Assembly: GCA_977020255.1 (NCBI GenBank)
Contig: CDROCS010004666.1
Location: 1-64,000 of the forward strand
Length of the DNA: 64,000 nucleotides
Direction: 5' to 3'
Source: Obrimoposthia wandeli
Taxonomy: Eukaryota
Below, one piece after another: positions 21,452-40,707 of the stretch. Numbering within the stretch: the stretch's first letter is position 1; each line of letters opens with the position of its first letter. The notes below the pieces were generated by a model. That model was not told the DNA's origin, searched no databases, and was given only the letters and a program-made list of their open reading frames with translations. The position numbers and the translations under genes were made by a program.

Positions 21452-24259
21452 ATGATTAAGAAAGGTGATAGGCATTTGTTAGGATTAAAATTTAACAGCA
21501 AAAAGTCACGTAACCTCAATACTGGCAGTAGCCTGCAAGCAGTAGCGCAAAGGGCTGACTGGAGAAAAATTATTGTCTCGCTACTCATGGCGAGCTTTGT
21601 TGTATTCATTAATTTATCTGAAACCCTAAGGCTGCCCGAGTTATTAGTGTATGACAAATTGGTTTTTCATAGTTATGACAAGCCTCAGCAGAATCATGCG
21701 CTATTACTTGAGGTTCCCTCAGAAACACTGAATAGTTCATCAGAGCTTATGAGCATTATCATTGATCGCCTGCTGGCACACTCACCAAAGCAAATTCTCA
21801 TCCTGAATTCACTGAATCATCTCGATCAGTCACAGCAGCTAGAATGGTTAAAGAATGAATATGTAGACTATGCCCCGCCTGTCCACACAATACTTCAAGA
21901 TGGAGGCAGCATTGGCTATCAATACGATACATCAAACGCCTCAAACACAATACCACCCCTAGGCTTTTCTCTTCCAGCTTCTGCTAGCTTTGGCATTACT
22001 CGCGCTATGCCACTTGAGATTTCAACCAGCGAAGAAATACTGCTGGGCTTTCAGGCCAAGCTCACAAAAGGAAATAAAAAAAGCTCAGATTTCATCTATA
22101 TTAATTTTAATCAAGGCACTAAGCCCATTCCACGCTACCCAGCGCAAAAACTACTCGAAATTGGCATCATTGATGAATTGATAAAAGATAAAATCGTACT
22201 TATCACCTCACCTTTAGATAACGTTACGGCCGGTTTGACGACTCCAAAAAATAATTATTCCGAGCCACTTTCCCCCGACCTTATACAGGCGATGGCACTT
22301 AACTCGCTGATTAATCAATCAGATATCAGCATGCTAAAACCTTGGCAGGCTGCTATCGTTTGCTTTTTATTATTTATGTTTTACCTATTTACGTTTCAAT
22401 GGCTAAATATACGTTTTGGTACGGTAATTATTGCCGCGTCTGGCATTACACTCCTTTTAATCGATTGGTATCTATTAAGCTTCCACTATTTTTACATACC
22501 CGCATTTAGTTTCATCGTTTCAATTGTCGCGGCATTATTAACGGCGATCCCCTTGCACCGCATAAGAGAACAGGGTGTCATCGAGACTTTGCACCTAGAT
22601 ATACTGTCGCAACTAAAATCTAAAAAAACACCCCATAGCTTTTATCAAGTAGAAGACCCTTGGAACCATATCATCGTTTTTATCAATCAACATTTACTGT
22701 TAAGTCGCTCTATCTTATTAGAACGCGTTGAGAATGATCACCGCGTCAGAGAAATAAAAAGCCTAGGGTGCAGCATTGATGACATAGCAGAACAGCGTCG
22801 AGATTATACACGCTTCCCTTATGATAAATCGTTACAGCAACAAATCCCTCTAGACTTAGAGAATCGTCATTATTTCAAACAGAGCTTTGAAGGCGAAAAA
22901 CAATTCCTGATTCCGCTCCGATTTGCGGAAGAGGTTTTAGGTTTCTGGGCTTTTACTGTCATTCCAGATGAGCACTGGGATCAGAATAAATTCTTTTCAG
23001 ATATTAATGTCTTTGCCAAACAAATAGGCTTGTTAATACATAACCGCAAAGCCTTTAATTACGAAGACAGTATTAATAGCAAGCTGCTTACGCAGCTACT
23101 GAATTTCAACCTAGGTTCAGGTAACCATAAATCGCTAAAGTCTGCAGTCGATGGCATAAATCATCGACTTCGCATCATGGAAGGGATATTTGATGGCATG
23201 AGTTCTGCCGCTATGCTGTATGACCTGTTTGGTCAGATTATTAGCAGTAACCACCTAATGGAGCAACTAGCTCGACAGTCTCACTTGTCTATTTATGACC
23301 TCACCTCTTTAGATTTAATTGCACAAGCCTGTGGTATTTCTAAAGACGAAGCACGCAGCCGCTTAAGACATGTTGCAATGAATGCAGCCAGCATTGACCT
23401 ACCACTCTCAGAATTGATTGATAATCGTCAGTATTTGCTTCGTATACGTTCTATCAAACCAAAAATCCAAACGACGGCAACCCTTAATGATAATGACCTG
23501 CCGTTTGAGTTATTGGGGATCCTATTCGAATTTATCAATGTCACTCCAATACAACAGAGATTTACCACCGACATCATCGTCTATGAAAATCTCTATTCAA
23601 TGCTAAGAAATGATCTCAGTGCGCTCTCTTTGTGCCAGCTACAATTAAGCTTATCACCCGCTTCCGATCAGAAACTGATGGCACAAATGGATCAAACCCT
23701 ACAGCACTGCACAGAAATAGTGACCAATGCAGAGGCATTGCTAAATGACACCTCAAGTAACCTAGCCAGCACAGGAAAACTATTACAACCCTTAGTGCTG
23801 CTTAAACGAATATTGGTTGAACTAAAAGAGCCTGCCGACCAAGCGAAGCTGTCGTTCAACGCCTTATTGCCAACATTCAGCAGCCTAATATTTATAGATG
23901 AGGATGAGCTTGCTCACTTGCTGATCCAAAGTTTACGTTTACTAGTAGAAGATGCGATACCCGATACTCAAATCAGCATCCTTTTCACGGAACAAGAGCG
24001 AGCAGATAAGCTACTGCATAACGGAAAAATCATGATAACCATGAGTAATGTGGGCTATGGCATGCCACAAAAAGAATTAAATGCCGAAAGAAAAGACACC
24101 AGCTATATTGAAGCCGATACCCTCTCACTATTTAAAAAAGCCGTCATGAACGTATCCCCCTGGCAAGTCATCGTTACCAATACTTCTCAAGTGGGCACGG
24201 GGTTCGAGATCAGTATTGAATTACCGATTATCAACTTTTATAGAACGATTGAGATCTAA
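21452..24259 (+). CDS. CHASE2-domain membrane sensor with GAF/PAS-like and degenerate histidine-kinase domains
   Basis: CHASE2 hallmarks (LPELLVYD..., TP...SPDLIQAMALNSL) followed by 3 TM helices, a GAF-like region, a PAS-like region (FDGMSSAAMLYDLFGQIISSN), an H-box lacking His (YSMLRNDL) and G1-like SNVGYGMP. Confidence 0.75.
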   Translation: MIKKGDRHLLGLKFNSKKSRNLNTGSSLQAVAQRADWRKIIVSLLMASFVVFINLSETLRLPELLVYDKLVFHSYDKPQQNHALLLEVPSETLNSSSELMSIIIDRLLAHSPKQILILNSLNHLDQSQQLEWLKNEYVDYAPPVHTILQDGGSIGYQYDTSNASNTIPPLGFSLPASASFGITRAMPLEISTSEEILLGFQAKLTKGNKKSSDFIYINFNQGTKPIPRYPAQKLLEIGIIDELIKDKIVLITSPLDNVTAGLTTPKNNYSEPLSPDLIQAMALNSLINQSDISMLKPWQAAIVCFLLFMFYLFTFQWLNIRFGTVIIAASGITLLLIDWYLLSFHYFYIPAFSFIVSIVAALLTAIPLHRIREQGVIETLHLDILSQLKSKKTPHSFYQVEDPWNHIIVFINQHLLLSRSILLERVENDHRVREIKSLGCSIDDIAEQRRDYTRFPYDKSLQQQIPLDLENRHYFKQSFEGEKQFLIPLRFAEEVLGFWAFTVIPDEHWDQNKFFSDINVFAKQIGLLIHNRKAFNYEDSINSKLLTQLLNFNLGSGNHKSLKSAVDGINHRLRIMEGIFDGMSSAAMLYDLFGQIISSNHLMEQLARQSHLSIYDLTSLDLIAQACGISKDEARSRLRHVAMNAASIDLPLSELIDNRQYLLRIRSIKPKIQTTATLNDNDLPFELLGILFEFINVTPIQQRFTTDIIVYENLYSMLRNDLSALSLCQLQLSLSPASDQKLMAQMDQTLQHCTEIVTNAEALLNDTSSNLASTGKLLQPLVLLKRILVELKEPADQAKLSFNALLPTFSSLIFIDEDELAHLLIQSLRLLVEDAIPDTQISILFTEQERADKLLHNGKIMITMSNVGYGMPQKELNAERKDTSYIEADTLSLFKKAVMNVSPWQVIVTNTSQVGTGFEISIELPIINFYRTIEI

Positions 24260-24639
24260 TGAATCAACCAATAAATAAAAAACGTATTTTACTCGTAGAA
24301 GATGATGAAGCAATTTCAATGCTAACCCTCATGTTTCTAGAACAGCAAAATATCGACACGGTTCACGCTAAAGATGGTGACGAAGCTTTATTACAGCTAA
24401 AAAACCAAAACTTTAACGTGATTATCACAGACTTGGTTATGCCGCAAAAAGATGGTTTAGCGTTTATAACCGAGCTGCGAAAGCTAGGTAATACTACTCC
24501 CGTCATCGTCACTAGCGGTATAACTGACAAACGCATTCATGACCAACTCTATGCAGTGGGTGTTGAAAAAATTTATACCAAACCTTTATTGCCAGAGGTC
24601 TACCTTGAACTCATAGAACATATTAAGCAGTATCTATAG
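24259..24639 (+). CDS. Single-domain response regulator (receiver only)
   Basis: LLVEDD, phospho-Asp ITDLVMP, TS and TKP are conserved. TAATG overlap with the sensor gene. Confidence 0.92.
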   Translation: MNQPINKKRILLVEDDEAISMLTLMFLEQQNIDTVHAKDGDEALLQLKNQNFNVIITDLVMPQKDGLAFITELRKLGNTTPVIVTSGITDKRIHDQLYAVGVEKIYTKPLLPEVYLELIEHIKQYL

Positions 24640-27600
24640 ATGGATATATTCCCATTAGCTATATTTCCAGAAGGAGGCCTAGCGAGTTCCGTTGTGGTCA
24701 CCGTTTGGATCGGCATATGGGTGGTTACTTTTCTTAACCTGCGCTTTGGTTTCGCACTTTCCGGTTTGGTTGTGCCGGGGTACTTGGTTCCTCTACTCAT
24801 CGTCAAACCTATCAGTGCCGGGGTCATTCTTTTAGAAGGGTTAACGACCTATTTCATTACGGTATTCTTAGCTAGCAGTTTAATGCGACGGATGGGCGCT
24901 AGCGAGATGTTTGGCCGCGACCGATTCTTTGCTTTAGTCTTAGTCAGCATTGTCGTTCGTGTTCTTTTCGATAGCTTGCTATTACCCACCCTAGGCCAGG
25001 CACTCGTGGATGCCGGTATAGACTTTGATTACCGCAATAACTTACAAAGTTTTGGCCTGATTATTATTTCGTTGATCGCTAACCAAATGTGGAATGGCGG
25101 AGTCAGACGTGGATCTTCTTCTTTACTGCTCTATCTCGGCATCACTTACCTCATTGTTAACTTCCTGATTATTCCCTACACCAATTTCAGCATCTCGAAT
25201 TTAAGTTTTATCTACGAGGATATGGCCAGCTCAATTTTAGCAACGCCAAAAGCTTATATTATTCTACTTACCGCAGCCTATATTGCCTCAAAAATGAATC
25301 TGCGCTATGGCTGGGAATTTAACGGCATACTTATTCCTTCTTTATTAGCACTGCAATGGTACGAACCCAGCAAGCTAGTCGTGACGTTTTTGGAGGCCTT
25401 TCTTATATTAGGTTTAGGCCGAATATTCCTTAAGCTGCCGCTGTTTGCTAACTTTAATATGGAAGGCTCACGCCTGCTGTTGTTTTTTTTCAACCTCAGT
25501 TTTATTTATAAATATTTATTAAGTCTGGTACTCATAAAATGGTTTCCAGAAGTCAAAGTTAGTGATTTCTTTGCTTTTGGTTATCTACTCAGTACGCTCT
25601 TGGCATTAAAAATGTTTCAAAAGGACATCCCAACACTGGTGACTCGAGCGACACTTCAAACATCAGGTTTTGCGCTAATATTCGCCAGTATCGTCGGCTT
25701 TGCCCTAACACTGATTGTATTTTCGCCCCCTCCCTCAAGCAATAACTCGTTTGCAAGTACCGATATTAAACGGGCAGAAAAAACACAAGAACAGCTGGTA
25801 ATTGCGGGCTATTCTAACTTCTATCAATCACGCACCTTGCAATATAGCCAGCCGACACTGCAAGATCTGGCAACCTATGAACAAGCATTCATTGCCATTA
25901 GACAGGCCTTGCTAACCACTACAAGACCCTTGCCTGCGAACCATCCAAAATTAATGGAAGCCTATGCATTGCTTTCAAGTATCGATGTCGAAATGATTCA
26001 AACACCAGAAAACTCGTTAATTATTAAAGATACTCGCCCAGAAAGAGCCGGTGGACTGGTGCTGATCAATCTCAATAAATCAACGGGTCTAACCTTAGAA
26101 GTGCCTGCGCCACTGAACGAAAATGGCATTGCCGACCTCAGCCTTAGAATGTACAGCCACTTAAACGCCAAAGCCCTAATCTATGCAGGCAGTCATCGCT
26201 TTCAAGACCCTCTTCGACAAAGTGATATGTTAAATGTACCACGCAGTTTTTTCCAAATTGCCCATGAACGGCTGAGTGAACGTAATGTTTTACAATTACG
26301 GGGTTATACCCGCTCTGCCGCACGTGAACTCTATGGTCAGCGTTTTGATGACGAGCTAATGACAGCACAAGACCTGCCAAACCAACTTTGGATTAAAGAA
26401 AGTTTGCCAGAGAGTTTAAATGTTACTCAGTTAAAAGCGGGCGTTAATAATTTTGTAATCAGCTGGAGCGCCCCTCATTTTTCCAATCGCCAAAGAGAAT
26501 ATAGCCGTGAAGGTTTTGCCGAACTGATGCTGACAAACTCTGGCATGAGAAAGTTAATTGCAAGTTTTGAACCCGCCATAGAATCAGGAAGAAAAACAAA
26601 CATAGATATTGAACAAACGCATTTACAAGACTGGCTACTGGCACATAAAGAAACGTGGGCGGCCAAATACAGTGAACGCTTTCAACTTGCTCAGCTCAAT
26701 GAATTAATATTTTTTGACGAACAAGTACTTTCCCCCTTATTTCTATTTATAGATAAAGATCCATCAACTAAAAACCTGCTTGATCAGCAGCAAGAATTAC
26801 AAAGCATAAACCGAATGGCTCAGGCTATGGGCTACCATATTTTGTTATTACAAGAACCCGATTCACGAGAGCAATTTCTAATTCTTACTGAGTTGACCTC
26901 AGATAAGCAACGTTATTGGGGAAGCTATATTTTTCGAATGGGTTCCACAGCGCCTTACTTTATAGAAACACCGCACCCACTAACCGAATCAAATAGCTTT
27001 GATTATGCGATTGACCTATTTCACGATTTACAGGCACAAGTATTGTTAGTGCCAACGAGTCACGCACTGGCAAATGCAGATGGCCGCTCGAACATGCTGG
27101 CACGAGATAATAAAATCACCTTATTTAATCGTGTTCACCAAAGTCTATTACGTCATTACCAAGCACAAGGACCGTTAGTTATTCAAACTCGAGGATTAAG
27201 TGCAAAACAGTGGAACCCACAGAATCCTGTCGATATTCGCTTAGCTATTTGGCAAAACTCAAACACACAATTTACTTCACCACTAATCGACAATCTAACT
27301 CGAAAAATAACGTTAAGTGGACTCAGCTATGACTTAGTCAACGGAGAAGCGGCTGAAGCAGGTTATGAAGACCACTACAGTTTACTCAGCCAGTACATGC
27401 CCGTAGCACGCAAGGCTGACATGGTAACGCTGTGGTTATCAGAAAATTTACGCCGAAAAATAAACCGAGGCACTGGCACAGCTACTTATCGCAAACAGTT
27501 TATGGCTATGCAAGTCGAGCTCAAAAGCCGTGATATTGAAAACTGGCTTAATACCATAGCGCGTAGTGATAAAAAGTTACGCCCTAAAATTTATCAACAG

Positions 27601-27879
27601 CTTCAAGCTTTCATTTATTCTGGCGACATAATAAGACTGGCTAATGCATTGGATGCACTTAAATCAGCAGCACCTGATGCAATGCAGCTTGAATACCTTC
27701 AAGACAGTGTTTCAAAACAATACTTTATTGCTATCACAGCACAAGATCAGTTGGTAGCACTTGCCAGTATCAATCCGTTAAAACCCGAAGAGCGTATTAT
27801 TTTAAAGGGCAGATCATCTATCACTAATTTTATCAAACGTCAGTCAGGCTGGCTGTTAGTATTAGAAGGAGGGCAATAA
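24640..27879 (+). CDS. capC: Poly-gamma-glutamate biosynthesis CapC/PgsC-family protein, doubled and fused to a large C-terminal domain
   Basis: SGLVVPGYL, FGRDRF and GLIIISLIANQM match the CapC motifs AGLVVPGYL, YGRRKF and GVIVPGLIANTI. A second diverged repeat follows (NGILIPSLLAL). About 700 aa of soluble C-terminus. Confidence 0.85.
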   Translation: MDIFPLAIFPEGGLASSVVVTVWIGIWVVTFLNLRFGFALSGLVVPGYLVPLLIVKPISAGVILLEGLTTYFITVFLASSLMRRMGASEMFGRDRFFALVLVSIVVRVLFDSLLLPTLGQALVDAGIDFDYRNNLQSFGLIIISLIANQMWNGGVRRGSSSLLLYLGITYLIVNFLIIPYTNFSISNLSFIYEDMASSILATPKAYIILLTAAYIASKMNLRYGWEFNGILIPSLLALQWYEPSKLVVTFLEAFLILGLGRIFLKLPLFANFNMEGSRLLLFFFNLSFIYKYLLSLVLIKWFPEVKVSDFFAFGYLLSTLLALKMFQKDIPTLVTRATLQTSGFALIFASIVGFALTLIVFSPPPSSNNSFASTDIKRAEKTQEQLVIAGYSNFYQSRTLQYSQPTLQDLATYEQAFIAIRQALLTTTRPLPANHPKLMEAYALLSSIDVEMIQTPENSLIIKDTRPERAGGLVLINLNKSTGLTLEVPAPLNENGIADLSLRMYSHLNAKALIYAGSHRFQDPLRQSDMLNVPRSFFQIAHERLSERNVLQLRGYTRSAARELYGQRFDDELMTAQDLPNQLWIKESLPESLNVTQLKAGVNNFVISWSAPHFSNRQREYSREGFAELMLTNSGMRKLIASFEPAIESGRKTNIDIEQTHLQDWLLAHKETWAAKYSERFQLAQLNELIFFDEQVLSPLFLFIDKDPSTKNLLDQQQELQSINRMAQAMGYHILLLQEPDSREQFLILTELTSDKQRYWGSYIFRMGSTAPYFIETPHPLTESNSFDYAIDLFHDLQAQVLLVPTSHALANADGRSNMLARDNKITLFNRVHQSLLRHYQAQGPLVIQTRGLSAKQWNPQNPVDIRLAIWQNSNTQFTSPLIDNLTRKITLSGLSYDLVNGEAAEAGYEDHYSLLSQYMPVARKADMVTLWLSENLRRKINRGTGTATYRKQFMAMQVELKSRDIENWLNTIARSDKKLRPKIYQQLQAFIYSGDIIRLANALDALKSAAPDAMQLEYLQDSVSKQYFIAITAQDQLVALASINPLKPEERIILKGRSSITNFIKRQSGWLLVLEGGQ

Positions 27880-27880
27880 T

Positions 27881-30538: not shown

Positions 30539-31571
30539 ATACTTAAAGCACAGTCTACAATTAACAGTATGGGCATTAATCGGGGGATGCATGATGTCGA
30601 TTCAAACCAGTCAAGCGACCTGCATGAAGCACCGTGTGCAAGAACAGCACAGCCTTAAATCTCTCACTAAGATTTTACGTTCGCAAAAACATGTTCCTTT
30701 TCAAACCGTCGATTCAGTGCGCTATCAATACGCAAAATCACTTTTTAAGCAATTACTCAATCCGCCTTTATTAACAACAGCAGCGACAACTGAAACGACA
30801 ACTGAAGAGAAGTCACAACCAGAGCTGTCCGATGCCGTTAAAACCTTAGCGACCCAAGCGGGTCTATGCTGGCAGTGGCTAACGATTTCTCATCGAGAAC
30901 AAAATCATACGGTATTGTTATTAATGGAACATAGCGATGATGCCAATAAGGGTGCACAAGGCCAAGGCGCTTATTTGTTTGCGTTAAATCAACCACTGAA
31001 CTTTGTTATTCAAGCCCCTCATCAATACTTTGATTACGCGACTGGAAAAATCGCGCTGCAGTTTTTCTTTGAGCAAGGCCTGCGCGCAATCACTATGAAT
31101 AGCGTTCATAGAAATCAAACGCCACAATCTGACTTAGCCCATCAGGCTAACAGTTTATTTTCCGCCTTTGCCGAAGCTTATGCAGAGGTTTTGTTAGATA
31201 AAACAGCCGATGAACAGACAACGAAGCAGGCTGAAGGCTATCTAATACAAGTCCACGGATTCAGTAATAAACACCGACGCAGCGAGGCCGGAAAAAAAGC
31301 CGATGTTATTATTAGTAATGGTACTCGCTCTCCGTCTCTTTATTTACGACAGAGCCAAGAGCGCATCAACAATACAACAGCGTTCAAAAGCTACCTCTAC
31401 GGTATAGATATTGATGAACTAGGTGGCAGCCAAAATAGCAGCTTGGCAATACTTAGGCAGCTAAATCAACAAACCCATTTTATTCATATCGAATTATCAG
31501 CGGATGCACGGAAAGAACTCAAGCGATCACCTAGCCAACGTGAGCAACTGTGGAGGAGCTTGCAACCATGA
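30528..31571 (+). CDS. Putative exported Zn-dependent amidohydrolase (possible gamma-glutamyl polymer hydrolase)
   Basis: Signal-like N-terminus and the motifs IQAPHQYFD, LIQVHGF and HIELS. This is the APH...HG...E pattern of Zn-exopeptidase-fold hydrolases such as phage PghP and N-formylglutamate amidohydrolase. Confidence 0.6.
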   Translation: MLIKYLKHSLQLTVWALIGGCMMSIQTSQATCMKHRVQEQHSLKSLTKILRSQKHVPFQTVDSVRYQYAKSLFKQLLNPPLLTTAATTETTTEEKSQPELSDAVKTLATQAGLCWQWLTISHREQNHTVLLLMEHSDDANKGAQGQGAYLFALNQPLNFVIQAPHQYFDYATGKIALQFFFEQGLRAITMNSVHRNQTPQSDLAHQANSLFSAFAEAYAEVLLDKTADEQTTKQAEGYLIQVHGFSNKHRRSEAGKKADVIISNGTRSPSLYLRQSQERINNTTAFKSYLYGIDIDELGGSQNSSLAILRQLNQQTHFIHIELSADARKELKRSPSQREQLWRSLQP

Positions 31572-34500
31572 ATAAAGCAAGATTGACCTTTCGCATACTA
31601 GGACTGATAAGTTTATTACTCTGCCTATCTGCCAGTGCAGAAACAGCGGTGCTCGCGAATAATCTTTCTAATAACCTCTCGAACAACCTTTATTGGGATG
31701 ACATCCCACGCTGGGAACATGCCACGGGTAAGGTTTCAAAAACAACGATTAAACACTCAGACTGGGATGCCGTAAACTTAGGCCCTGGAGCAATGGTCAC
31801 CTATCGCATTCCACGCAGCGCATTTACTCGCATTGTCAGTGATGAAAAAAAGAGCGCTGAAAAAAATAGCTTTGAGAAAATTAAATTATCTCGTGGTGAT
31901 GGCAGCGGCCTATTCACTGAATTAACACAGATTGAAAAACCCCATACGGTGGATAAAAAAAACAGCAGCCTGCTATTAATGCCTGAAAATAATTACTGGC
32001 AGCTATTAATTCATAATGCCAGCGAGAAATCGGTCATATTATCCGTAATGACCAGCAGAGCGAGTGAAGCAGCGCCTTTCCCACAGGCACGAACACTCAT
32101 CACTCCCAATGCCAATCCTATTAATAATAAAGACCAGTGGTTAACGACCCCCCATCTTAGCCAACGCGATCTATTTGCTTTTAATAATGGCGATACTAAA
32201 ACGACCTACTCGGTAACAGGCCCCAGAGTTATTGAAGTGGAAAGTATATTATTAGCCGCCGGAATGGATGAATCACTGCCCAGTTATTTAATAACCAGTG
32301 AGTTAGACGGTGCACCTTGGCAGCAGTGGCGACATCAGGCAGCGCTTTACCCTTTTATTCGCCGCAGTGACATGCTTAAAGATAGCAACGAGCTGCTGCG
32401 CAGCACTTATACTGAAAAATATTTTTTAAAAATCCCAGACGGCTCACATACGTTAAGCTTTAATACTTTACGCCCCATCGCTTTGCGAATTTTTGCAAAC
32501 CAGCCTTGGGGATTATTAAGTAACGAAGATTCACTCTACCCAAGATTTAAAGAGCAGCAGCAAGCTCAACTCGACTATCAAAATACACTTAACAATTTAA
32601 CCGATACATTACTAGCCAGCCCAACGGCGGCAATTACTCAGCTGCTTAACCAGTGGCAAGATAAACAAGACCCCATCACGGCATCAAAAGAAAGAGTCGT
32701 TAACCGTTCGCAATTTTATCGTGCTTTGGCAGCCAATACCTCCAGACCACCACTGAAAACTTTCAATCTTAAGCCTGTAGTTGCTTCATATACCTCCATT
32801 CAAAAACACCCTGACCTGATAGACAATAGCTCAGTAGACAATAGCTCAGCAGACAGCAGTTCAGAAAGCGCTTCAGACCACGATTTAGAAACGGGATTAG
32901 AAAACCATTTAGAAAACCGGGCACAGACTCAAACCTCTAGTATATTTAACCAACTAGCCGAAAAAGATCTGTTAACGTTTTCTCTACCTAATCGATCAGG
33001 TCCCTCAAAACTTCGCGTTCGCTTGGCAGGACTCAACCAGCAGCCAGCGAAGTTTTTACTCAGTAATCAGCAAGGGCAAAACTCTACAATTTTTTATTAT
33101 CCACAGTTTAGATCCAAGCTATTAAATGCGAGCAATCACAACTTAGAAAAAGAGGAAGTTTTAATCGCCGAAGCCTTTATTCCTCTGAGCAATGAAACAA
33201 AAACGATCACAATACAAACCGTATCTGGGGCCACCAGCAAACTGCAACTAGCCTACCTCATGGGTAAGCAACTCAATTTGCAGCCTGACGAATTGATGCA
33301 AGCCCTAAGGCAGCTCGAGACTGAATCGGATAACAGTATTATTGCTTACTTGCAGGGCAAGTACGTCGAAAACAAGGCTCATGCCGACTACCGTTTATTG
33401 CAATCATCACTTGCAGATCTGGCACACAGAATTCAAATACGCTCACAGCAGTTCGAGCAAACCTCGCTCAATAGCGCTAGCCCATTAATCATCAAGCCTG
33501 TGGTCGCTAAACAGTGGCAACAAACGGTAAATACCTTAATTGATAAAAAAGAATGGGCGGCTGCAATTGATATCGTCGCCCCCCTAACTCGACATAAAAA
33601 TATCAGCATTCGTAATGCGGCGGCTACACTTCAAGCCGATATATTATTGGGCGCGGGCGAGTTCATTCTTTATCAGCAATGGCTGCTGAAATTATTAACG
33701 TCCCCAGCCTATGCGGATTTAAGCGGCTATGCCGAAAGTATGCTCATTGAGCGTTATAAAAAATTAGAACAGTGGGCCGCGCTGGAAAAATTATCTGCCT
33801 ATCGATTTATGCAAACTTCTGATATCGCCTATTTAGAATTAATCGAAACTAGTTTAACCAGCGAATCTAGCCTGCCACTTAAGCAGCAATTAGCCTTAAT
33901 TCATCAAGTGCTTAGCGCTGAAAAGATTACCGTTCAGCCAGCTTTAGCAGACAGCCCAACTTTATGGCAACCACTGCAAACAGATAAACTCTCTGCTGCG
34001 TCAACAGTGCTGATGCATGGACACGATTTTGATAATTACAGCACTCGCTATACGGCAAATCCCTCACAAGCACTAGAGTTCACGATAGAAGGCCCTACCG
34101 TATTGGCAATCAGTTATCGAACGCTATTGGCTAAAGGCACTGCACAAAGCCCTTACAGCTGGTTAACCTTACACGATAATCAACAAGCCCATTATATTCC
34201 CACCTTCCAGTCTGCCCTATCCAACAGTGTCTCTATCGTCGGGGCCGACAGGCAAGTTAGCGGTGAACAAAGCATTGAATATCAGCTTGGGGCCGGTCGT
34301 CATCAAATACACATTCGCCCTGAGCTGGGTGATCTTGTTATCGGCTTATCCACTCGTACCAGCGCGGTGAATGAAGACGCGAGACTTACCCTGCTAAGCC
34401 AAGGCGAGATCGATACTGAACTCGATACTTCATCCAAAATTAAACTATTCAAGCAACAGCAAACCCATGCACATCCGGTTAAATCGTTACTGCAATTACT

Positions 34501-36394
34501 TTGGGCTAGTGAGCATTCACCTAAAAAATCCCTGCCCTTAATTGCCCTAGGCAATGCCATCATTGAGCAATACCCTAGCAGCCCATTACTCAATCGTTTA
34601 AATACTCGCCTGAACCAATTCAGCGGTTGGCAATTAGAGCAGCAACTTATCGACAGTGCTGGCAAACGTTCTATTACATTTAAAACAGCCCCTGTATCCA
34701 ATCCAAAAACCCGCATAAGACACAACTTAAACCGACCCGATGTTGAATCTGGCCAATGGTTATCCGCACACAGTGACTTAAGCTTTAATATCAATAGCAC
34801 CAGCCCTATTGCGCTTAAATTACAATTAAAACAGCTGTCGTTACTCAACGGTTATACCGAAGGTGCAAGCATCCAGTTATGGTTAAACGAGCAACTTTAT
34901 CGCACAATTCATCTCACCAGTAACCGTCCATTCAAAAGCCTAATACTGAATCTAAAAGCCGGTAATCAACAACTGCGCATCGCCATGAAAGATGCTAAGT
35001 CAGATCAACAAGTGCTCTTTAGAGGATCACGAAAAGCGCCCAATAAACCATGGCAATTAATTAATATGCCAGCCAAACAAGCTTATGCCGTCAGTTTAAA
35101 AGATAACCCAGTAACGGTATTCGCCGCGGCGTCTGACTGGCTGCGTATTGATGAGCTGATAAACGGACAAGTACAGCGCAGTTATCACTATCAAGAAGAA
35201 AACGGGACATTAGACCTGCTACCCCAAAGCGGCCAGTCAGAGCGTTTATTAAGAGTTTATAAGCTTCGCCTCAAACCTTATTTAACAGATTTAGCGTCGA
35301 GCTCAGCTCCGAATAATCTCGTTAAAAAAACAACCTATCCATTTACCCCACAGCTTAAGTCTTGGCAGCTGGTCGATCATTTAGAATTAGGTGAAGAAAA
35401 TGAAGGCACTTGGGGTGGCTATTTAAAACTGTCCAACCAGGGGTTTAGCGATGATCCCGAAGACGATATCAGCTCTTCAATGAATGCCTTTCAACTGGGC
35501 CATACTTATCGTAAGAAAGTATCAGACGACCATTACTGGACCAGCACAACCGGCGATTGGCAAAGCAATGCCTACTGGAAAAGTGATACCTTTGTCCGCT
35601 CCCTCAATACCAGCGGTGAAAACAATGGTAATACCTTAGGCACCGATCAAAAACTGATTATGACCGACCCAGAAACAGATTGGCAGTTTAGCCTGAACGC
35701 GAAAGCTCTGTATTTTCAGGCCTCAGGCGACCTTAGTGATCATGTATTACACGCCTATACCGAGGCCCAATACCGACACAACTGGAAGTTTAATCGTAAG
35801 CAAACTCTGGATGCTTCTTTAACCGGATTTGCTCGTTATCTAGATAACAAATCACCTCGCGCAGCCAATAACATCGACCCACTGGTGTATAGCGATTACA
35901 AACGTGACCATACTTATGGCTGGCGCTTAGCCGGTAATTGGCGTCATCGTTTATGGCACGACAGCCGCTGGAATATCGGTAGCCAGTTGATCAGCAATGA
36001 ATCATTGCTCACTCTTGACCAAGCCTCCTTACAAACGGGCTACCAGCAATACTTCAACGGTTTGACCGCCGCAGTATCACTGCGTCATGTTCAGCGCTTT
36101 GCTGACGATGACCGCCAGTTAAAAACGGTTAATAACATAATAAAAGGCAGCCTGCGCTTTCATCAATGGAATGTAAAAGGCAACGAAGGGTATTTTGGTC
36201 TAACTTTAGAACATGACCTATCCATTGAAGAAAGTGCCGTAGCGCTGACCTTTGGTTTTAATCACAGTGATGGTCGCGGTGTGCGAGATTATTTGCCCAC
36301 AGAACTGCCAATGCGTGATCTCTATCAACAACAAAGCTCGCAGCAAATAACTTCGCAAAAAATAAATACATTATCGGATCCGTCTTCACTATGA
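31568..36394 (+). CDS. Large exported protein with a TPR-like helical region and C-terminal outer-membrane beta-barrel
   Basis: Signal peptide from ATG 31568 (ATGA overlap; SASA|ET). Helical TPR-like stretch at about aa 660-760. The last ~330 aa show alternating aromatic/hydrophobic strands (WGGYLKL, FQLGHTY, YTEAQYRH, WRLAGNWRH, LQTGYQQY, ALTFGF). Confidence 0.7.
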   Translation: MNKARLTFRILGLISLLLCLSASAETAVLANNLSNNLSNNLYWDDIPRWEHATGKVSKTTIKHSDWDAVNLGPGAMVTYRIPRSAFTRIVSDEKKSAEKNSFEKIKLSRGDGSGLFTELTQIEKPHTVDKKNSSLLLMPENNYWQLLIHNASEKSVILSVMTSRASEAAPFPQARTLITPNANPINNKDQWLTTPHLSQRDLFAFNNGDTKTTYSVTGPRVIEVESILLAAGMDESLPSYLITSELDGAPWQQWRHQAALYPFIRRSDMLKDSNELLRSTYTEKYFLKIPDGSHTLSFNTLRPIALRIFANQPWGLLSNEDSLYPRFKEQQQAQLDYQNTLNNLTDTLLASPTAAITQLLNQWQDKQDPITASKERVVNRSQFYRALAANTSRPPLKTFNLKPVVASYTSIQKHPDLIDNSSVDNSSADSSSESASDHDLETGLENHLENRAQTQTSSIFNQLAEKDLLTFSLPNRSGPSKLRVRLAGLNQQPAKFLLSNQQGQNSTIFYYPQFRSKLLNASNHNLEKEEVLIAEAFIPLSNETKTITIQTVSGATSKLQLAYLMGKQLNLQPDELMQALRQLETESDNSIIAYLQGKYVENKAHADYRLLQSSLADLAHRIQIRSQQFEQTSLNSASPLIIKPVVAKQWQQTVNTLIDKKEWAAAIDIVAPLTRHKNISIRNAAATLQADILLGAGEFILYQQWLLKLLTSPAYADLSGYAESMLIERYKKLEQWAALEKLSAYRFMQTSDIAYLELIETSLTSESSLPLKQQLALIHQVLSAEKITVQPALADSPTLWQPLQTDKLSAASTVLMHGHDFDNYSTRYTANPSQALEFTIEGPTVLAISYRTLLAKGTAQSPYSWLTLHDNQQAHYIPTFQSALSNSVSIVGADRQVSGEQSIEYQLGAGRHQIHIRPELGDLVIGLSTRTSAVNEDARLTLLSQGEIDTELDTSSKIKLFKQQQTHAHPVKSLLQLLWASEHSPKKSLPLIALGNAIIEQYPSSPLLNRLNTRLNQFSGWQLEQQLIDSAGKRSITFKTAPVSNPKTRIRHNLNRPDVESGQWLSAHSDLSFNINSTSPIALKLQLKQLSLLNGYTEGASIQLWLNEQLYRTIHLTSNRPFKSLILNLKAGNQQLRIAMKDAKSDQQVLFRGSRKAPNKPWQLINMPAKQAYAVSLKDNPVTVFAAASDWLRIDELINGQVQRSYHYQEENGTLDLLPQSGQSERLLRVYKLRLKPYLTDLASSSAPNNLVKKTTYPFTPQLKSWQLVDHLELGEENEGTWGGYLKLSNQGFSDDPEDDISSSMNAFQLGHTYRKKVSDDHYWTSTTGDWQSNAYWKSDTFVRSLNTSGENNGNTLGTDQKLIMTDPETDWQFSLNAKALYFQASGDLSDHVLHAYTEAQYRHNWKFNRKQTLDASLTGFARYLDNKSPRAANNIDPLVYSDYKRDHTYGWRLAGNWRHRLWHDSRWNIGSQLISNESLLTLDQASLQTGYQQYFNGLTAAVSLRHVQRFADDDRQLKTVNNIIKGSLRFHQWNVKGNEGYFGLTLEHDLSIEESAVALTFGFNHSDGRGVRDYLPTELPMRDLYQQQSSQQITSQKINTLSDPSSL

Positions 36395-39300
36395 TGCAGC
36401 CAATGAGTATGAAAGCATTAAGCCAACAGCTGAACACCCAACTATGCATAGGATTAACCGATCTTAATAAGCAGCTTGAGGGTAAAAACATTGAGCGCTG
36501 CCAGAAAGATTTATTACTGTTTATTAAAGACCAAAATAGCTCAGAAAATGAATTGCACGCGATTATGGTTACTTTTTTAATCACTGAACTTAAGCAACAG
36601 TTAGAAACCCTTGATCAACAGCAAAAACATTACCAAAGCTTTCTAACCAATAGTCGTAACTCGGCGACTGAACTCGAACGAAGAAACTATATTTTACAGT
36701 TTGCTAGTCAACTAGGAGCGTCTCAAAAACAACTGCGTGGTGATAAAAAAGCTTTTAAACGTTATTTTGGCGCCGACGCTATTTCTGAACGCTATGCACG
36801 ATTAAACAAAGATAATGAACACTACATCACGTTTATACTCGATCGTTTGGCCCACATTACCAGCGATTGGTTTACCGAGCTCACTACCCTAGAAATTAAG
36901 CAACACTGGCAACAGATTCAACTTGAACCTCTGCTGGTTAATATGCTGACACATTTCCAAGAAGATCGACTCAAGCATGCCACGTTTAAATGTTTAAGTT
37001 TCATCATCCGTCGCTTAAAAGGAAAGAGTGCTGACTATTTGGGCAGCTCGACTATTCGTTATGTATATCGCTTTGCGCAAGATTACCGCCAGCCTATTTG
37101 GACCCAAGTTGAAGCGGCCGCACTGATTGCAGAAATAGAACCACAGAGCCTACTCTCCATAGCCCAGCGTCACTTTAATGCTGCAAAAGATACTGTAAAA
37201 GATGGTGCAAAGAATAGTGCAAAGGATAGCAAAAAAGGAGATGACCTTATTTTCTTACGACGTCACCTGCTATCAATCATTGCAGACCACGCCAATGCGC
37301 ACCCGCCTTTATTAAGCATCATTCCCTTAGCCGTGAACGACCCCAGTGAATTTGTGCGCCAAGGCTTGGTCAATATACTGCCAAGCCTACCCGATGACTT
37401 AGTCTCACAATTGATCATCCCGCTCAGTGAAGACCAGACGGAACAAGTACGCGCAAGTTTAGTATTGCAGTTACCAATACTGGCTAAGCAAGCTGCATTA
37501 AGCGAGGTTTGCAGCCAATTAATGTTAAATTTTCTGCACGCTCAACAACCCCTATTTGTATTAAGAACCACACTGATCACCACCGTCGATTTTTTCCGCA
37601 GTATCAATAAAAGCTCAGGCTTAAACGTTACAGAAAAAAGTCTTGCTGCCCAGCCTATTTACCAGCAATTGATTGCAGCGATATCTGATTTGCACACACA
37701 GCATAGCGCGACCAAGGTCAGACGCTGGGCAGCCAATGCCCGTGAACAACTGTGGGCAACGGTGTATAAAATTTGTCGTGAGCATGAATTTTCTGCCGCT
37801 CAAGATCAATTTCAAAAACGCTCGTTAGCAGATCTTTCGTTAGCAGAGCCCTCGACAGACAATCTTTGTTTAGGCGATTTACCCTTAGGTAAGTCTCGTC
37901 GCCTACCCAAGGCCATAAGAAAGCATTTAACTTCAGACATGCAAACACGCTTATTAGCCGTGCAAGCTCAAGATGGTTTTGGCTTCGACATCAGCGCCAA
38001 TAAAGTAATCAGAGACCATAAGGTAAAATTTAGGCTCTGGCGCTTTATTCACGAACTACGAAACAGTGCCACCGATAAACGCCAAAATTATTCCCACATG
38101 ACAGGGCGAGTCTATTATGGCGAACAACATATACCGTCTAATATCGTATCTGAACGCAGTGCGACCAAAGTACCTGGGGAGCCTTTATTTCAAGATGACG
38201 AAGAAGGCTGGCGTCCTTACCTGCCACTGGTCGATCAGGTTATTTCAGCCATTGATCAAAACTGGCCAACCAAAGCCATCAAGATCATCACCAGCGAAGG
38301 CATAACCTGGCTTACGCCACCGAATTCTTTGTGGCAGCGCTTAACCGCACGAGCCACACTGGTATGGTATTTCAAAAGTTTTGCACAACTACGCAACTGG
38401 TCTGAAGGGGATGCTGAAGCCCCTGATGCTTATTTAAAATCTCTTGTTGATCTAGGCTTTACCATTGAGCTGACGCCACATACTGATCATAATAAAACCG
38501 CCTTTAAACTCGACCAGCAAGTACAGCGCTTTTTCCCGGTCTTTTTCCCACCTTGGTTTATTGATGGCTGGCGTCAATTCGAAGACTACTTTTTTTCCGT
38601 TTATCAAAACAGTCTCAACCATTTACTGATATTTTGCAGCGGTCTGTCGCTGCTATTTTTTGGTAGCCATTTAGGGGCCAACTGGCAAATGCGTAAAGCA
38701 CGCGCCAAGATTCCCTTAGTCATTGGCGGCTGGGGCACGCGTGGAAAATCGGGCACCGAGCGCCTAAAAGCCGCCTTATTCAATGCTATGGGTTATCACG
38801 TAGTATCAAAAACTTCGGGCTGTGAAGCGATGTTTTTACACGGTACTGCCCTGCAGCCGCTGCACGAAATGTTTTTATTTCGCCCTTACGATAAAGCAAC
38901 TATTTGGGAACAAGCGCAGGTAGTAACGTTATCTGAAAAACTAGGCGCTGATGTTTTCTTATGGGAATGCATGGGGCTAACGCCGCGTTATATTGAGATT
39001 TTACAACAACAATGGATGTGTGATGACATTGCCACCATCACCAACTGCTATCCCGACCATGAAGATATTCAAGGCCCTGCGGGAGTTGATATTCCCAAGG
39101 TGATGCAAAAGTTTGTACCGAAAAAAAGCATATTAATTACCAGTGAAGAAAACATGCGTCCGTTTCTTGATGATGCGGCGCGCGAGAAAGAAACCGAACT
39201 GCATAAAATTAATTGGCTAGATGCAGGATTGCTTACCAACGATGTATTAAATCGTTTTCCTTATGAAGAGCACCCTTACAATATTGCACTAGTAATGAAG

Positions 39301-40707
39301 ATGGGGGCTTTGCTCAACCTGCCGGCTGAATATTGCTTAAAAGAAATGGCTGATCGTGTTGTCCCGGACTTAGGAGTGCTTAAAATATATCCGCTAGCCG
39401 AGGTCAACGGTCGCTATTTAAGTTTTATCAACGGCATGTCGGCTAACGAACGCTTCGGTACCCTAAGTAATTGGCAACGCGTCGGCTTTAACGATACTCA
39501 CTTAGATGAGCAACCTAATATATGGATAACGACCGTGGTTAATAACCGCGCCGATCGTATTGCTCGCTCTCAGGTATTCGCTCAACTGCTGGTTGAAGAT
39601 ATTGGCGCGGACAAACATTTTCTGATTGGCTCTAATTTGGATGGCCTGCAAAACTATATTGATGCCGCGTGGGATAACTATATTGATGAGCTCAGCATTG
39701 CCGATGAAAGCATTGAACATGAACTGTCTAAACAAAAAATCATCAGCACCTTCGGCCAAATCGCCAAACGCTTAAGAGTACCGTCAAGCCAACAACAGGT
39801 GAATCAACGCTTAGTCGCTATGTTAAAAGGCATTGGCTTGGATGCTGATACGGATACTCATACTGCACCAACAACCGCAGCCGAATGGACTGAGCAACAC
39901 ATCCAACAACTCATCAATAAACTAAATGCTAGCGAGGTTGTTGAAGAAAATAAGCACAGTATTCTTCAACAGTGGCAGCAAGATACTGCCGAATTAGCCG
40001 CGATGACCTCTCTTTCAGAAAGCCTAAATAGCGCCAATAAAAGTGAGCTAGCGGCGCTCATCATAACCTGCCAGCAACAACTGGCCAGCTGGTTTAAAGC
40101 ACGCTTTGTCGTCGTTTCTGAGTTTTATACCAGCGGTAACCAACTCATCACCCTAATTGCCAATAATACCCCCGCAGGCCTGACTAATCGCATCATGGGC
40201 TTACAAAATATTAAAGGCACCGGTTTAGATTTTGTTTATCGCTGGCAAGCTTGGGATCGTACCCACTCTTTATGTGAACAGCTGAATGCAGATGATGAGT
40301 TAATCGCAAAAAGTGCGGTTAGCGAACTGGCGCGTATTCAGGATTTTGGCCCACTCGACCAACACAAAATACTCAGCTCTGTCGAAGCGGTTAAGCATAA
40401 GTCGATTGCCCAAACTGAGCAGTTCCAAGCCGAGCTCGAACTCATCGACGATAACCTCATACGCCACTCACAAGATGGGCAAGTCAAATCTGATAACGAG
40501 CAACATCGCTTCACACTTGTGATGATCGACTTTATTGAAGCCCTACTAGACCCAGGCCAAGCGATTAAACGCAAAAAAGCAGCCAATCAGATTTATCAGG
40601 ATTTAGCTGATGAACGCATTAGCCATGCTCGCGCCGCCATTGAGTTACAAACACTGAATAAAAAACAAAAAGGGGGATGGTTACGAAAAGCCCTGAATAA
40701 GAATTAG
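36391..40707 (+). CDS. capB: Poly-gamma-glutamate synthase CapB/PgsB-family ligase fused to a ~750-aa HEAT-repeat N-terminus
   Basis: P-loop GGWGTRGKSGTERL, KTSGCEA, WECMGL, ITNCYPDHEDIQGP, FINGMSANE and VVNNRADRIARS are collinear with CapB (NGIRGKS, KTTGT, ECMAV, NVLEDHMDVMGP, NGFAAND, NCRADRVDRT). A hydrophobic helix precedes the ligase domain. Confidence 0.87.
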   Translation: MMQPMSMKALSQQLNTQLCIGLTDLNKQLEGKNIERCQKDLLLFIKDQNSSENELHAIMVTFLITELKQQLETLDQQQKHYQSFLTNSRNSATELERRNYILQFASQLGASQKQLRGDKKAFKRYFGADAISERYARLNKDNEHYITFILDRLAHITSDWFTELTTLEIKQHWQQIQLEPLLVNMLTHFQEDRLKHATFKCLSFIIRRLKGKSADYLGSSTIRYVYRFAQDYRQPIWTQVEAAALIAEIEPQSLLSIAQRHFNAAKDTVKDGAKNSAKDSKKGDDLIFLRRHLLSIIADHANAHPPLLSIIPLAVNDPSEFVRQGLVNILPSLPDDLVSQLIIPLSEDQTEQVRASLVLQLPILAKQAALSEVCSQLMLNFLHAQQPLFVLRTTLITTVDFFRSINKSSGLNVTEKSLAAQPIYQQLIAAISDLHTQHSATKVRRWAANAREQLWATVYKICREHEFSAAQDQFQKRSLADLSLAEPSTDNLCLGDLPLGKSRRLPKAIRKHLTSDMQTRLLAVQAQDGFGFDISANKVIRDHKVKFRLWRFIHELRNSATDKRQNYSHMTGRVYYGEQHIPSNIVSERSATKVPGEPLFQDDEEGWRPYLPLVDQVISAIDQNWPTKAIKIITSEGITWLTPPNSLWQRLTARATLVWYFKSFAQLRNWSEGDAEAPDAYLKSLVDLGFTIELTPHTDHNKTAFKLDQQVQRFFPVFFPPWFIDGWRQFEDYFFSVYQNSLNHLLIFCSGLSLLFFGSHLGANWQMRKARAKIPLVIGGWGTRGKSGTERLKAALFNAMGYHVVSKTSGCEAMFLHGTALQPLHEMFLFRPYDKATIWEQAQVVTLSEKLGADVFLWECMGLTPRYIEILQQQWMCDDIATITNCYPDHEDIQGPAGVDIPKVMQKFVPKKSILITSEENMRPFLDDAAREKETELHKINWLDAGLLTNDVLNRFPYEEHPYNIALVMKMGALLNLPAEYCLKEMADRVVPDLGVLKIYPLAEVNGRYLSFINGMSANERFGTLSNWQRVGFNDTHLDEQPNIWITTVVNNRADRIARSQVFAQLLVEDIGADKHFLIGSNLDGLQNYIDAAWDNYIDELSIADESIEHELSKQKIISTFGQIAKRLRVPSSQQQVNQRLVAMLKGIGLDADTDTHTAPTTAAEWTEQHIQQLINKLNASEVVEENKHSILQQWQQDTAELAAMTSLSESLNSANKSELAALIITCQQQLASWFKARFVVVSEFYTSGNQLITLIANNTPAGLTNRIMGLQNIKGTGLDFVYRWQAWDRTHSLCEQLNADDELIAKSAVSELARIQDFGPLDQHKILSSVEAVKHKSIAQTEQFQAELELIDDNLIRHSQDGQVKSDNEQHRFTLVMIDFIEALLDPGQAIKRKKAANQIYQDLADERISHARAAIELQTLNKKQKGGWLRKALNKN

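Follow-up and report, generated by a model that had tools for sequence, protein, structure and literature searches.

The window analyzed, a 64,000-nucleotide stretch (positions 1 to 64,000 of contig CDROCS010004666.1, assembly GCA_977020255.1), contains seven genes on the + strand between positions 21452 and 40707, here named g1 to g7, that abut or overlap at every junction. From g1 to g7 the junctions are TAATG (1-nt overlap), TAG-ATG (no gap), a 1-nt gap, an 11-nt overlap, ATGA and ATGA, as the earlier note had described, and no N is present in the region. The genes and their parts are:

21452-24259 (+): g1, 935 aa, probable CHASE2-type membrane sensor with a degenerate histidine-kinase C-terminus
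24259-24639 (+): g2, 126 aa, stand-alone response-regulator receiver
24640-27879 (+): g3, 1079 aa
24640-25722 (+): g3 N-terminal membrane domain (residues 1-361), tandem CapC/PgsC repeats, about 12 hydrophobic segments
25780-27483 (+): g3 C-terminal soluble part, two degenerate copies of the g5 hydrolase fold (residues 381-645 and 735-948)
27881-30538 (+): g4, 885 aa, one N-terminal membrane anchor and a large, probably periplasmic body of unknown fold
30528-31571 (+): g5, 347 aa, secreted (possibly lipoprotein) zinc amidohydrolase-like enzyme, candidate polymer hydrolase
31568-36394 (+): g6, 1608 aa, signal peptide, beta-rich modules, helical (TPR-like) repeats (residues ~650-788, nt 33515-33931) and a predicted C-terminal 14-strand beta-barrel (residues ~1281-1566, nt 35408-36265); translation is taken from the ATG at 31568, although the mechanical ORF begins at GTG 31550
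36391-40707 (+): g7, 1438 aa
36391-38622 (+): g7 N-terminal 744 aa, HEAT-type helical repeats plus a strongly conserved linker region (residues ~545-720)
38623-40707 (+): g7 C-terminal half, hydrophobic helix (745-763), CapB/PgsB amide-ligase core (764-1095, nt 38680-39675), a roughly 190-aa insertion and a helical C-terminal extension

The flanking genes are unrelated and mostly on the other strand, and encode aconitase B, a YHYH protein, a 3'-5' exonuclease and a LuxR-type protein. The GC content inside the operon (0.40-0.45) matches that of the surroundings. Scans for promoters and terminators at both ends gave nothing above the shuffled expectation.

The synthase core and conservation of the operon

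The ligase core of g7 aligns with profile positions 18-334 of 380 of TIGR04012 (PgsB/CapB) with 203.9 bits (E 3.1e-60). This is the only NCBIfam hit for g7, although it falls below the curated equivalog cut-off of 222.7 bits. No Mur, FolC or CphA model was matched in NCBIfam at E<=0.01 or in Pfam at E<=10. A tblastn search gave 27% identity (E 5e-26) to the pXO2 capB, and of the 104 matching records in the plasmid collection 85 are Bacillus; a megablast search of g7 against plasmids found no match, and a search of PDB sequences with g7 gave nothing meaningful. Alignment of eight g7-family proteins with B. anthracis CapB showed that the membrane helix, the P-loop GxRGKS, GKTxG, ECM, DHxDxxGP, NGxxAN, NxRxDRxxR and the terminal NIxG are kept. 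In the N-terminal region the window protein has no Pfam hit, while orthologues carry PF13646 or PF02985 HEAT hits, and the eight-sequence alignment contains the conserved blocks DKRQ, KVPGEPL, RPYLPLxD and LRNW.

The CapC domain of g3 lies at residues 24-157 and matches PF14102 in two stretches (E 1.4e-37, 129.2 bits against a cut-off of 27), whereas the score to TIGR04011, 56 bits, is below the equivalog cut-off of 96.45. The first repeat aligns with the full length of B. anthracis CapC at 28% identity (E 1e-10) and shares the GLVVPGYL motif, while the second is weaker (E 6e-4 to the first repeat). This membrane domain is the most conserved part of the protein between Oleispira and Victivallales. 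Both g7 and g3 are a distinct subfamily whose substrate could differ.

The arrangement of the genes is far beyond chance. The order g1-g7 recurs at 20-45% protein identity in independent loci from Gamma- and Betaproteobacteria, namely in two metagenome contigs and in the Marinobacter, Halomonas and Sulfuricellaceae (MAG) loci, and g3-g7 was also found in Oleispira MAGs and in an uncultured gammaproteobacterium. Victivallales keep only g3, a fusion of the N-terminal third of g4 with g5, and g7. A Stappia locus returned by the same search was set aside, as it is a 48-residue chance-level match in a high-GC region crowded with overlapping ORFs. The family is large, with more than 1800 g7-like clusters and 934 g4 representatives.

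Envelope and signalling components

Protein g5 has no sequence link to gamma-PGA hydrolases (PghP, PF05908) or to N-formylglutamate amidohydrolase (PF05013): no Pfam hit was obtained at E<=10, a profile search against PDB sequences and a tblastn search against phage genomes were both empty, and a further profile search recovered only the same family plus Bacteroidota proteins with a T9SS tail. Its structural model, however, is confident. The best structural match is Atu2144, followed by an N-formylglutamate amidohydrolase, which acts on a small N-acyl-glutamate and is not a polymer hydrolase. The neighbours named as enzymes all act on glutamate amides, and three of the top five matches are PGA hydrolases, with two gamma-PGA hydrolase families and a YndL-PGA complex represented. 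The g5 family has an invariant His/Asp/His plus His/Glu set and invariant arginines, which we infer would fit a polycarboxylate. In contrast to PghP, YndL and N-formylglutamate amidohydrolase, g5 has an extra N-terminal helical/beta part of about 140 aa, is secreted into a periplasm and is encoded by the producer's own synthase operon.

The C-terminal part of g3 is related to g5. Alignment of the g5 and g3 profiles gave 95% probability (E 2.9e-8) for the first copy and 88% (E 3.1e-6) for the second. In these copies the putative metal ligands are replaced or not conserved, PH..D becoming PA..N and QxHGF becoming QxRG. A periplasmic location of this part is inferred from the positive-inside pattern of the loops. 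Protein g4 contains a single hydrophobic segment (residues 7-25) and has no Pfam, NCBIfam or PDB-sequence match; its 934 representatives, at 50% identity, are mostly of about 820 aa. Profile alignment of g4 with g6, carried out to test for shared beta-sandwich modules, showed no relation (1% probability). Fusions of g4 with g5 occur in nature, the protein P0257 containing full g4 plus g5, and place both in one compartment.

Protein g6 has a signal peptide and is modeled as beta-sandwiches and helical repeats followed by an outer-membrane barrel, although the overall pTM of the model is low (0.37) and the helical repeats give no Pfam TPR hit. The barrel is predicted with 14 strands, a generic porin size, like OmpG, CymA and Slam and not 16-18 like PgaA, BcsC or AlgE. 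Among solved chains, the PelB, BcsC and PgaA barrels rank third to sixth, after the 14-strand porins, and Slam barrels are among the best AlphaFold-DB matches to residues ~1278-1566. Slams have an N-terminal periplasmic helical-repeat region before a 14-strand barrel, as is predicted for g6, but they are about 490 aa and move lipoproteins, while g6 has several beta-sandwich modules and sits in a polymer-synthase operon. One g6 orthologue carries a peptidoglycan-binding OmpA domain.

In g1, hydrophobic segments at residues 40-58 and 300-366 lie around a roughly 240-aa external domain. The window protein has no Pfam hit, but its Atlas cluster carries HATPase_c and, in 66% of members, CHASE2; the Sulfuricellaceae orthologue hits PF05226 CHASE2, and the orthologue in locus L018 does so faintly. 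The H-box position holds S (in the window protein), H, N and N in the four orthologues aligned, and the N-box Asn is an invariant Asp, while the G1/G2-like glycines are kept. Hence, g1 may not be a kinase. Protein g2 is an intact receiver (PF00072, E 1.1e-20) in which E14/D15, D58 (the phospho-acceptor), S86 and K108-P109 are invariant in six orthologues.

A proposed machine for polyamide synthesis and export

Taking into account that: (i) g7 carries a complete CapB/PgsB-type ligase behind a membrane-associated helix; (ii) g3 carries a tandem CapC/PgsC membrane domain, and (iii) the seven genes form one conserved unit, we propose, with moderate confidence, that the operon encodes an envelope-spanning machine that makes and exports a gamma-glutamyl-type polyamide in a two-membrane bacterium. 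In the model, g7 and g3 form the inner-membrane synthase, as PgsB-PgsC do in Bacillus, and polymerize glutamate with ATP, although the 744-aa N-terminus of g7 precedes a helix that is N-out in Bacillus PgsB, which leaves the topology unresolved. The chain emerges into the periplasm at the C-terminal part of g3, whose two metal-site-less copies of the hydrolase fold would bind the polymer rather than cut it. The membrane-anchored g4 and the candidate hydrolase g5 act together in the periplasm, where they would guide, trim or clear the polymer, as AlgL, BcsZ, PgaB and PelA do for polysaccharides. Protein g6 bridges the periplasm and passes the chain through its predicted barrel. Finally, g1 and g2 switch the machine on or off, perhaps at the protein level, since g2 has no output domain. 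The identity of the polymer and its export are inferred; no polymer has been shown for any member of the family. No expression data were found, the one public run holding the sequence consisting of fragmentary contigs of a roughly 99%-identical relative from a library of unknown kind, and the absence of g6 in Victivallales indicates that export across the outer membrane is not part of the minimal system. The earlier note, which had proposed a polyamide synthase paired with a Gram-negative export toolkit and its own sensor and receiver, is supported in every part that could be examined in silico, with the corrections given above for the TPR repeats it invoked, the barrel and the sensor.

Compared with the PgsBCA(E)/CapBCA(DE) synthetase of B. 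subtilis and B. anthracis, the operon shares the amide ligase with its membrane helix before the P-loop and the polytopic CapC-type partner, both encoded in one operon. It differs in the size of the ligase (about 400-460 aa in Bacillus), in the tandem duplication of CapC (about 150 aa) and its fusion to about 700 aa, in the absence of CapA/PgsA (PF09587, not hit by any of the seven proteins even at E<=10), which Bacillus needs, and of CapE and CapD, and in the dedicated envelope proteins added in a host with an outer membrane. With the synthase-dependent exopolysaccharide systems (alginate Alg8/44-AlgK-AlgE-AlgL, cellulose BcsA/B-BcsC-BcsZ, PNAG PgaCD-PgaA-PgaB, Pel PelF/D/E/G-PelB/C-PelA) it would share the overall logic of an inner-membrane polymerase, a periplasmic enzyme acting on the polymer, one outer-membrane protein that combines helical repeats with a beta-barrel, and a dedicated signal input. 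However, the presumed polymerase is an ATP-dependent amide ligase, no glycosyltransferase and no PilZ, GGDEF/EAL or other c-di-GMP module was found in g1-g7, the place of the latter being taken by the probable CHASE2-type sensor and the receiver, and g4 has no counterpart.

An alternative, which seems unlikely, is that the ligase does not make homopolymeric gamma-polyglutamate. It might polymerize another amino acid or a mixed polyamide, or add glutamyl chains to an acceptor such as a glycan, lipid or protein, in the way haloarchaeal CapB has been suggested to serve glutaminylglycan synthesis; CapB homologues in Halobacteria may serve a different glutamate-containing wall polymer (PMC11915815). 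The scores below the equivalog cut-offs, the large extra domains of the ligase, the absence of CapA and the two best structural matches of g5 would favor this possibility, whereas the retention of all CapB motifs and of a CapC partner, together with the glutamate-amide neighbours and invariant arginines of g5, argue against it. Somewhat less likely still, the glutamate polymer would not be released but stay in the periplasm or on the cell surface as a nitrogen/carbon store, osmolyte or envelope component, with g6 as an anchor or scaffold. The Victivallales core without g6, the OmpA domain of one g6 orthologue, the suitability of a dedicated hydrolase for remobilization of a store, and the filing of CapB/CapC of Gammaproteobacteria under 'storage compounds' in a paper on lucinid symbionts (PMC11168628) are in its favor. 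Nevertheless, in Proteobacteria g6 is always present between g5 and g7 with translationally coupled junctions, its barrel ranks next to exporter barrels after the 14-strand porins, and a periplasmic polyanion store appears to lack precedent. An accidental neighbourhood in which only g3 and g7 work together, suggested by the lack of Pfam or NCBIfam hits in g1, g4, g5 and g6, is already contradicted by the synteny, and the junctions, the g4::g5 fusions and the g5-like domains of g3 argue against it.

Poly-gamma-glutamate synthesis has been studied mainly in Gram-positive Bacillus, with a few other cases, and how such a polyanionic polyamide would cross a periplasm and an outer membrane is not known. 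Literature searches found no description of this architecture, the nearest mentions being generic: CapB and CapC are treated as the mandatory PGA capsule genes by CapsuleFinder (PMC5542703), CapB is noted as present in Gammaproteobacteria (PMC11915815), and CapB/CapC are listed for lucinid symbionts (PMC11168628). In a further reading, about as likely as not, this would be the first dedicated trans-envelope secretion system for a non-polysaccharide polymer in diderm bacteria, built around fused CapB and CapC 'giant' subunits, with inactive hydrolase domains reused as polymer-binding modules and a new periplasmic family (g4). Its hosts, widespread among marine and saline Gamma- and Betaproteobacteria, would then be unrecognised producers of polyglutamate.

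The operon offers a concrete, conserved and testable candidate machine, present in culturable and genetically tractable genera (Marinobacter, Halomonas). Four of its parts, the g4 family, the g6 exporter candidate, the g5 hydrolase family and g1, lack any Pfam or NCBIfam hit in the window proteins, and a fifth, the N-terminal region of g7, has only weak HEAT hits in orthologues. If confirmed, it would extend the principle of synthase-dependent secretion from polysaccharides to polyamides, would change how the CapB/CapC hits reported by annotation pipelines in Proteobacteria are read, and would point to new producers and new hydrolases of an industrially used polymer. For cold-adapted oil degraders such as Oleispira, it would give a candidate for matrix, cryo- or osmoprotective material.

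Organization and conservation of the operon

The listing of open reading frames and the inspection of the junction sequences confirmed the presence of seven co-directional genes on the plus strand, as follows:

g1, 21452-24259 (+), 935 aa, sensor-like protein with the transmembrane layout of CHASE2 sensors
g2, 24259-24639 (+), 126 aa, receiver without output domain
g3, 24640-27879 (+), 1079 aa, protein with an N-terminal CapC membrane domain
g4, 27881-30538 (+), 885 aa, protein with one N-terminal membrane anchor
g5, 30528-31571 (+), 347 aa, protein with a predicted hydrolase fold
g6, 31568-36394 (+), 1608 aa from the ATG, protein with predicted helical repeats and a predicted C-terminal β-barrel
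g7, 36391-40707 (+), 1438 aa, protein with a PgsB-type ligase core

The successive junctions are TAATG, TAG-ATG, a 1-nt gap, an 11-nt overlap, ATGA and ATGA, exactly as described in the earlier note. A 270-nt gap separates g1 from a divergent upstream gene, and a convergent 3′-5′ exonuclease gene starts 23 nt after g7. The neighbouring genes (aconitase B, a YHYH protein, a LuxR-type protein, cytochrome b561 and NUDIX) are unrelated, and base composition does not set the operon apart. Two antisense open reading frames of 181 and 108 aa (34303-34848 and 36258-36584, both on the minus strand) lie inside g6 and across the g6/g7 junction; they start with TTG and GTG, overlap conserved coding sequence, and are most likely not genes. 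The closest relatives are Oleispira MAGs, with 93% identity for g7. In addition, a public run whose kind is not on record holds fragmentary low-depth contigs about 99% identical to the 30500-36450 stretch, and hence a close relative of this Oleispira is present in that sample.

A word-indexed search with the ligase region returned more than 1800 clusters of proteins, mostly about 1400 aa long, from sources that include Alkalimarinus, Marinobacter, Halomonas/Vreelandella, Marinobacterium, Oleiphilaceae, Psychrosphaera, Sedimenticolaceae, Contendobacter and Sulfuricellaceae. Most of them are named "hypothetical", "HEAT repeat domain-containing" or "PgsB". The order g3-g4-g5-g6-g7 is kept in two Oleispira MAGs, an uncultured gammaproteobacterium, a Marinobacter, a Halomonas and a Sulfuricellaceae MAG. 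Extension of the analysis upstream showed the complete g1-g7 order in the last three and in two metagenome contigs, at 20-45% identity, and four shorter contigs also show g1 directly before g3, three of them with g2 in between. Two Victivallales MAGs carry only g3, a fusion of the N-terminal third of g4 with g5, and g7, flanked by unrelated genes. Therefore, the minimal unit is composed of the ligase, the CapC protein and the hydrolase-like protein, to which the proteobacterial form adds g6, g1 and g2. In Halomonas sp. ZH2S (locus L008, 14801-24149) the cassette is followed by a polysaccharide export cluster containing YjbH, a GfcC-like gene, Wza, Wzc, and epimerase and nucleotidyl-transferase genes, so that two surface-polymer systems, that of the cassette being inferred, sit side by side. 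In the Sulfuricellaceae MAG it is flanked by defence-type genes, with a Wadjet-like JetD/SbcC-type pair upstream (locus L020, 1-2472) and a type I restriction-modification set, with AAA and GIY-YIG genes, downstream (locus L009, 14629-24413).

The CapC and PgsB cores of g3 and g7

Residues 24-157 of g3 hit the Pfam CapC family (PF14102, E 1.4e-37, 129 bits against a cut-off of 27) in two stretches. The first repeat aligns with the whole of Bacillus anthracis CapC at 28% identity and shares the GLVVPGYL motif, and it is followed by a second, weaker repeat. The membrane domain, of roughly 360 aa, is by far the most conserved part of g3 between Oleispira and Victivallales. In g7, residues 764-1095 hit TIGR04012 PgsB (E 3e-60, 203.9 bits), the only NCBIfam family found for this protein, while no Mur-ligase or FolC model appeared in Pfam even at E<=10. 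When 72,556 plasmids were searched by tblastn, 85 of the 104 matching records were from Bacillus; the matches include pXO2 capB (27% identity, E 5e-26), together with Streptomyces and haloarchaeal homologues. An alignment of eight family members with CapB keeps the hydrophobic helix and the basic stretch before the P-loop, the motifs GxRGKS, GKTxG, ECM, DHxDxxGP, NGxxAN and NxRxDRxxR, and the terminal NIxG. An insertion of roughly 190 aa precedes NIxG and a helical extension follows it. Nevertheless, both scores lie below the curated equivalog cut-offs (222.7 bits for PgsB; 96.45 against the 56 bits obtained for PgsC), and therefore the proteins form a distinct subfamily, not orthologues in the strict sense. 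No CapA/PgsA is present. The N-terminal region of g7 extends for 744 aa before a helix that is N-out in Bacillus PgsB; a re-entrant hairpin with the preceding aromatic segment FFPVFFPPWFIDGW is possible. g7 also contains a strongly conserved linker (DKRQ, KVPGEPL, RPYLPLxD, LRNW).

Putative envelope and signalling components

g5 has a hydrophobic N-terminus (...LIGGC in the Oleispira protein), whereas other orthologues have signal-peptide or lipobox-like ends. Eleven orthologues share the invariant residues H165, D169, R195, H243, H320, E322 and R328. Comparison of the predicted g5 structure with solved proteins gave the following matches:

Structural matches of the g5 model, with their scores
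Atu2144: 13.8
N-formylglutamate amidohydrolase: 11.5
phage PghP: 11.0
YndL with bound PGA: 10.9
phage PM1 PGA hydrolase: 10.6
M14 carboxypeptidases and the CCP5 deglutamylase (plateau): about 9.5-9.9

The best-matching enzymes thus cleave amide bonds of glutamate, although the margin over the generic plateau is modest and no sequence-level link was found. The UniRef entry of the Alkalimarinus alittae orthologue is named "Haem-binding uptake Tiki superfamily ChaN domain...", a name supported neither by the Pfam scan nor by the structural search of the Oleispira protein. A profile search with the g5 alignment also detected proteins of about 400-510 aa (P0290-P0301, P0303 and P0304) with a g5-like domain over about 35-43% of the query (E 1e-9 to 1e-19) and a T9SS C-terminal sorting domain (PF18962); hence, the g5 hydrolase-like family also occurs as a secreted stand-alone protein outside this operon. 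Profile-profile comparison showed that residues 381-645 (95% probability, E 2.9e-8) and 735-948 (88%, E 3.1e-6) of g3 are homologous to g5, with the candidate metal ligands replaced or not conserved. From the distribution of basic residues in the loops between the approximately 12 hydrophobic segments, we infer that the g3 C-terminus is periplasmic, in the same compartment as g5.

The g4 protein has one N-terminal membrane anchor and no match in Pfam, NCBIfam or PDB sequences; Atlas leads to CBM or Ig-like domains scored only 0.66-0.69. An exhaustive profile search found 934 representatives at 50% identity, nearly all of about 820 aa. One of them (P0257, 1157 aa) is a full g4 fused to a g5 domain with the His/Asp/His motifs intact, which, together with the Victivallales fusion, ties g4 and g5 functionally.

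g6 has a signal-peptide-like N-terminus, just after which there is a short low-complexity run (NNLSNNLSNNL; within 31568-31750), and its first 520 residues are poorly conserved in distant orthologues. Residues 520-1608 were modelled with nine orthologues. The overall confidence of the model is low (pTM 0.37), since the domains are not placed relative to each other, but the locally confident parts (pLDDT 70-90) show eight or nine paired helices (residues ~650-788), two β-sandwich regions and 14 long antiparallel strands (residues ~1281-1566). Protein-language-model neighbours name PgaA, BcsC and PelB at 0.79-0.80, which is only a lead, and the Sulfuricellaceae orthologue carries an OmpA domain. 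An outer-membrane location with a periplasmic helical-repeat arm is therefore a prediction, while an export function is inferred by analogy.

The g1 protein itself has no Pfam hit, but it fits the 1 + 3 transmembrane layout of CHASE2 sensors, and its Atlas cluster and some of its orthologues carry CHASE2 and HATPase_c. However, in four orthologues the H-box His is present only once and the N-box Asn is an invariant Asp, although the G1- and G2-like glycines persist. Thus, g1 is probably not a conventional kinase. g2 is a receiver with all phosphorylation residues invariant and no output domain. In Marinobacter and Halomonas a GAF-HisKA-HATPase_c histidine kinase of 516-529 aa, transcribed divergently, lies directly upstream of the g1 orthologue (loci L018, 1975-3525, minus strand, and L019, 1954-3543, minus strand). 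Since g1 lacks a conserved H-box His, this protein is a candidate for the true kinase of the receiver g2 in those genera; Oleispira has no such gene at that position.

Proposed mechanism and relation to known systems

The ligase and CapC cores, together with the conserved operon structure, the homology between g5 and the C-terminal part of g3 and the natural g4::g5 fusions, are the basis of the mechanism that we propose. We infer that the product is γ-polyglutamate or a close polyamide, that the degenerate hydrolase domains of g3 bind it, that g4 and g5 process it, that g6 exports it, and that g1 and g2 gate the activity. In this scenario, which also relies on the predicted g5 hydrolase fold and the predicted barrel and repeats of g6, the operon would work like a hybrid of the Bacillus PgsBC synthase and the synthase-dependent exopolysaccharide systems of Gram-negative bacteria. 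It is not a strict member of either, since the equivalog cut-offs are not reached and there is no CapA, no glycosyltransferase and no c-di-GMP module. No description of this architecture was found in full-text searches of the literature, and published work only notes CapB/CapC hits in Gammaproteobacteria at the annotation level (PMC5542703, PMC11915815, PMC11168628). We consider it more likely than not that the operon makes and exports a glutamate-type polyamide, and the arrangement is of high interest for envelope biology and biopolymer research.
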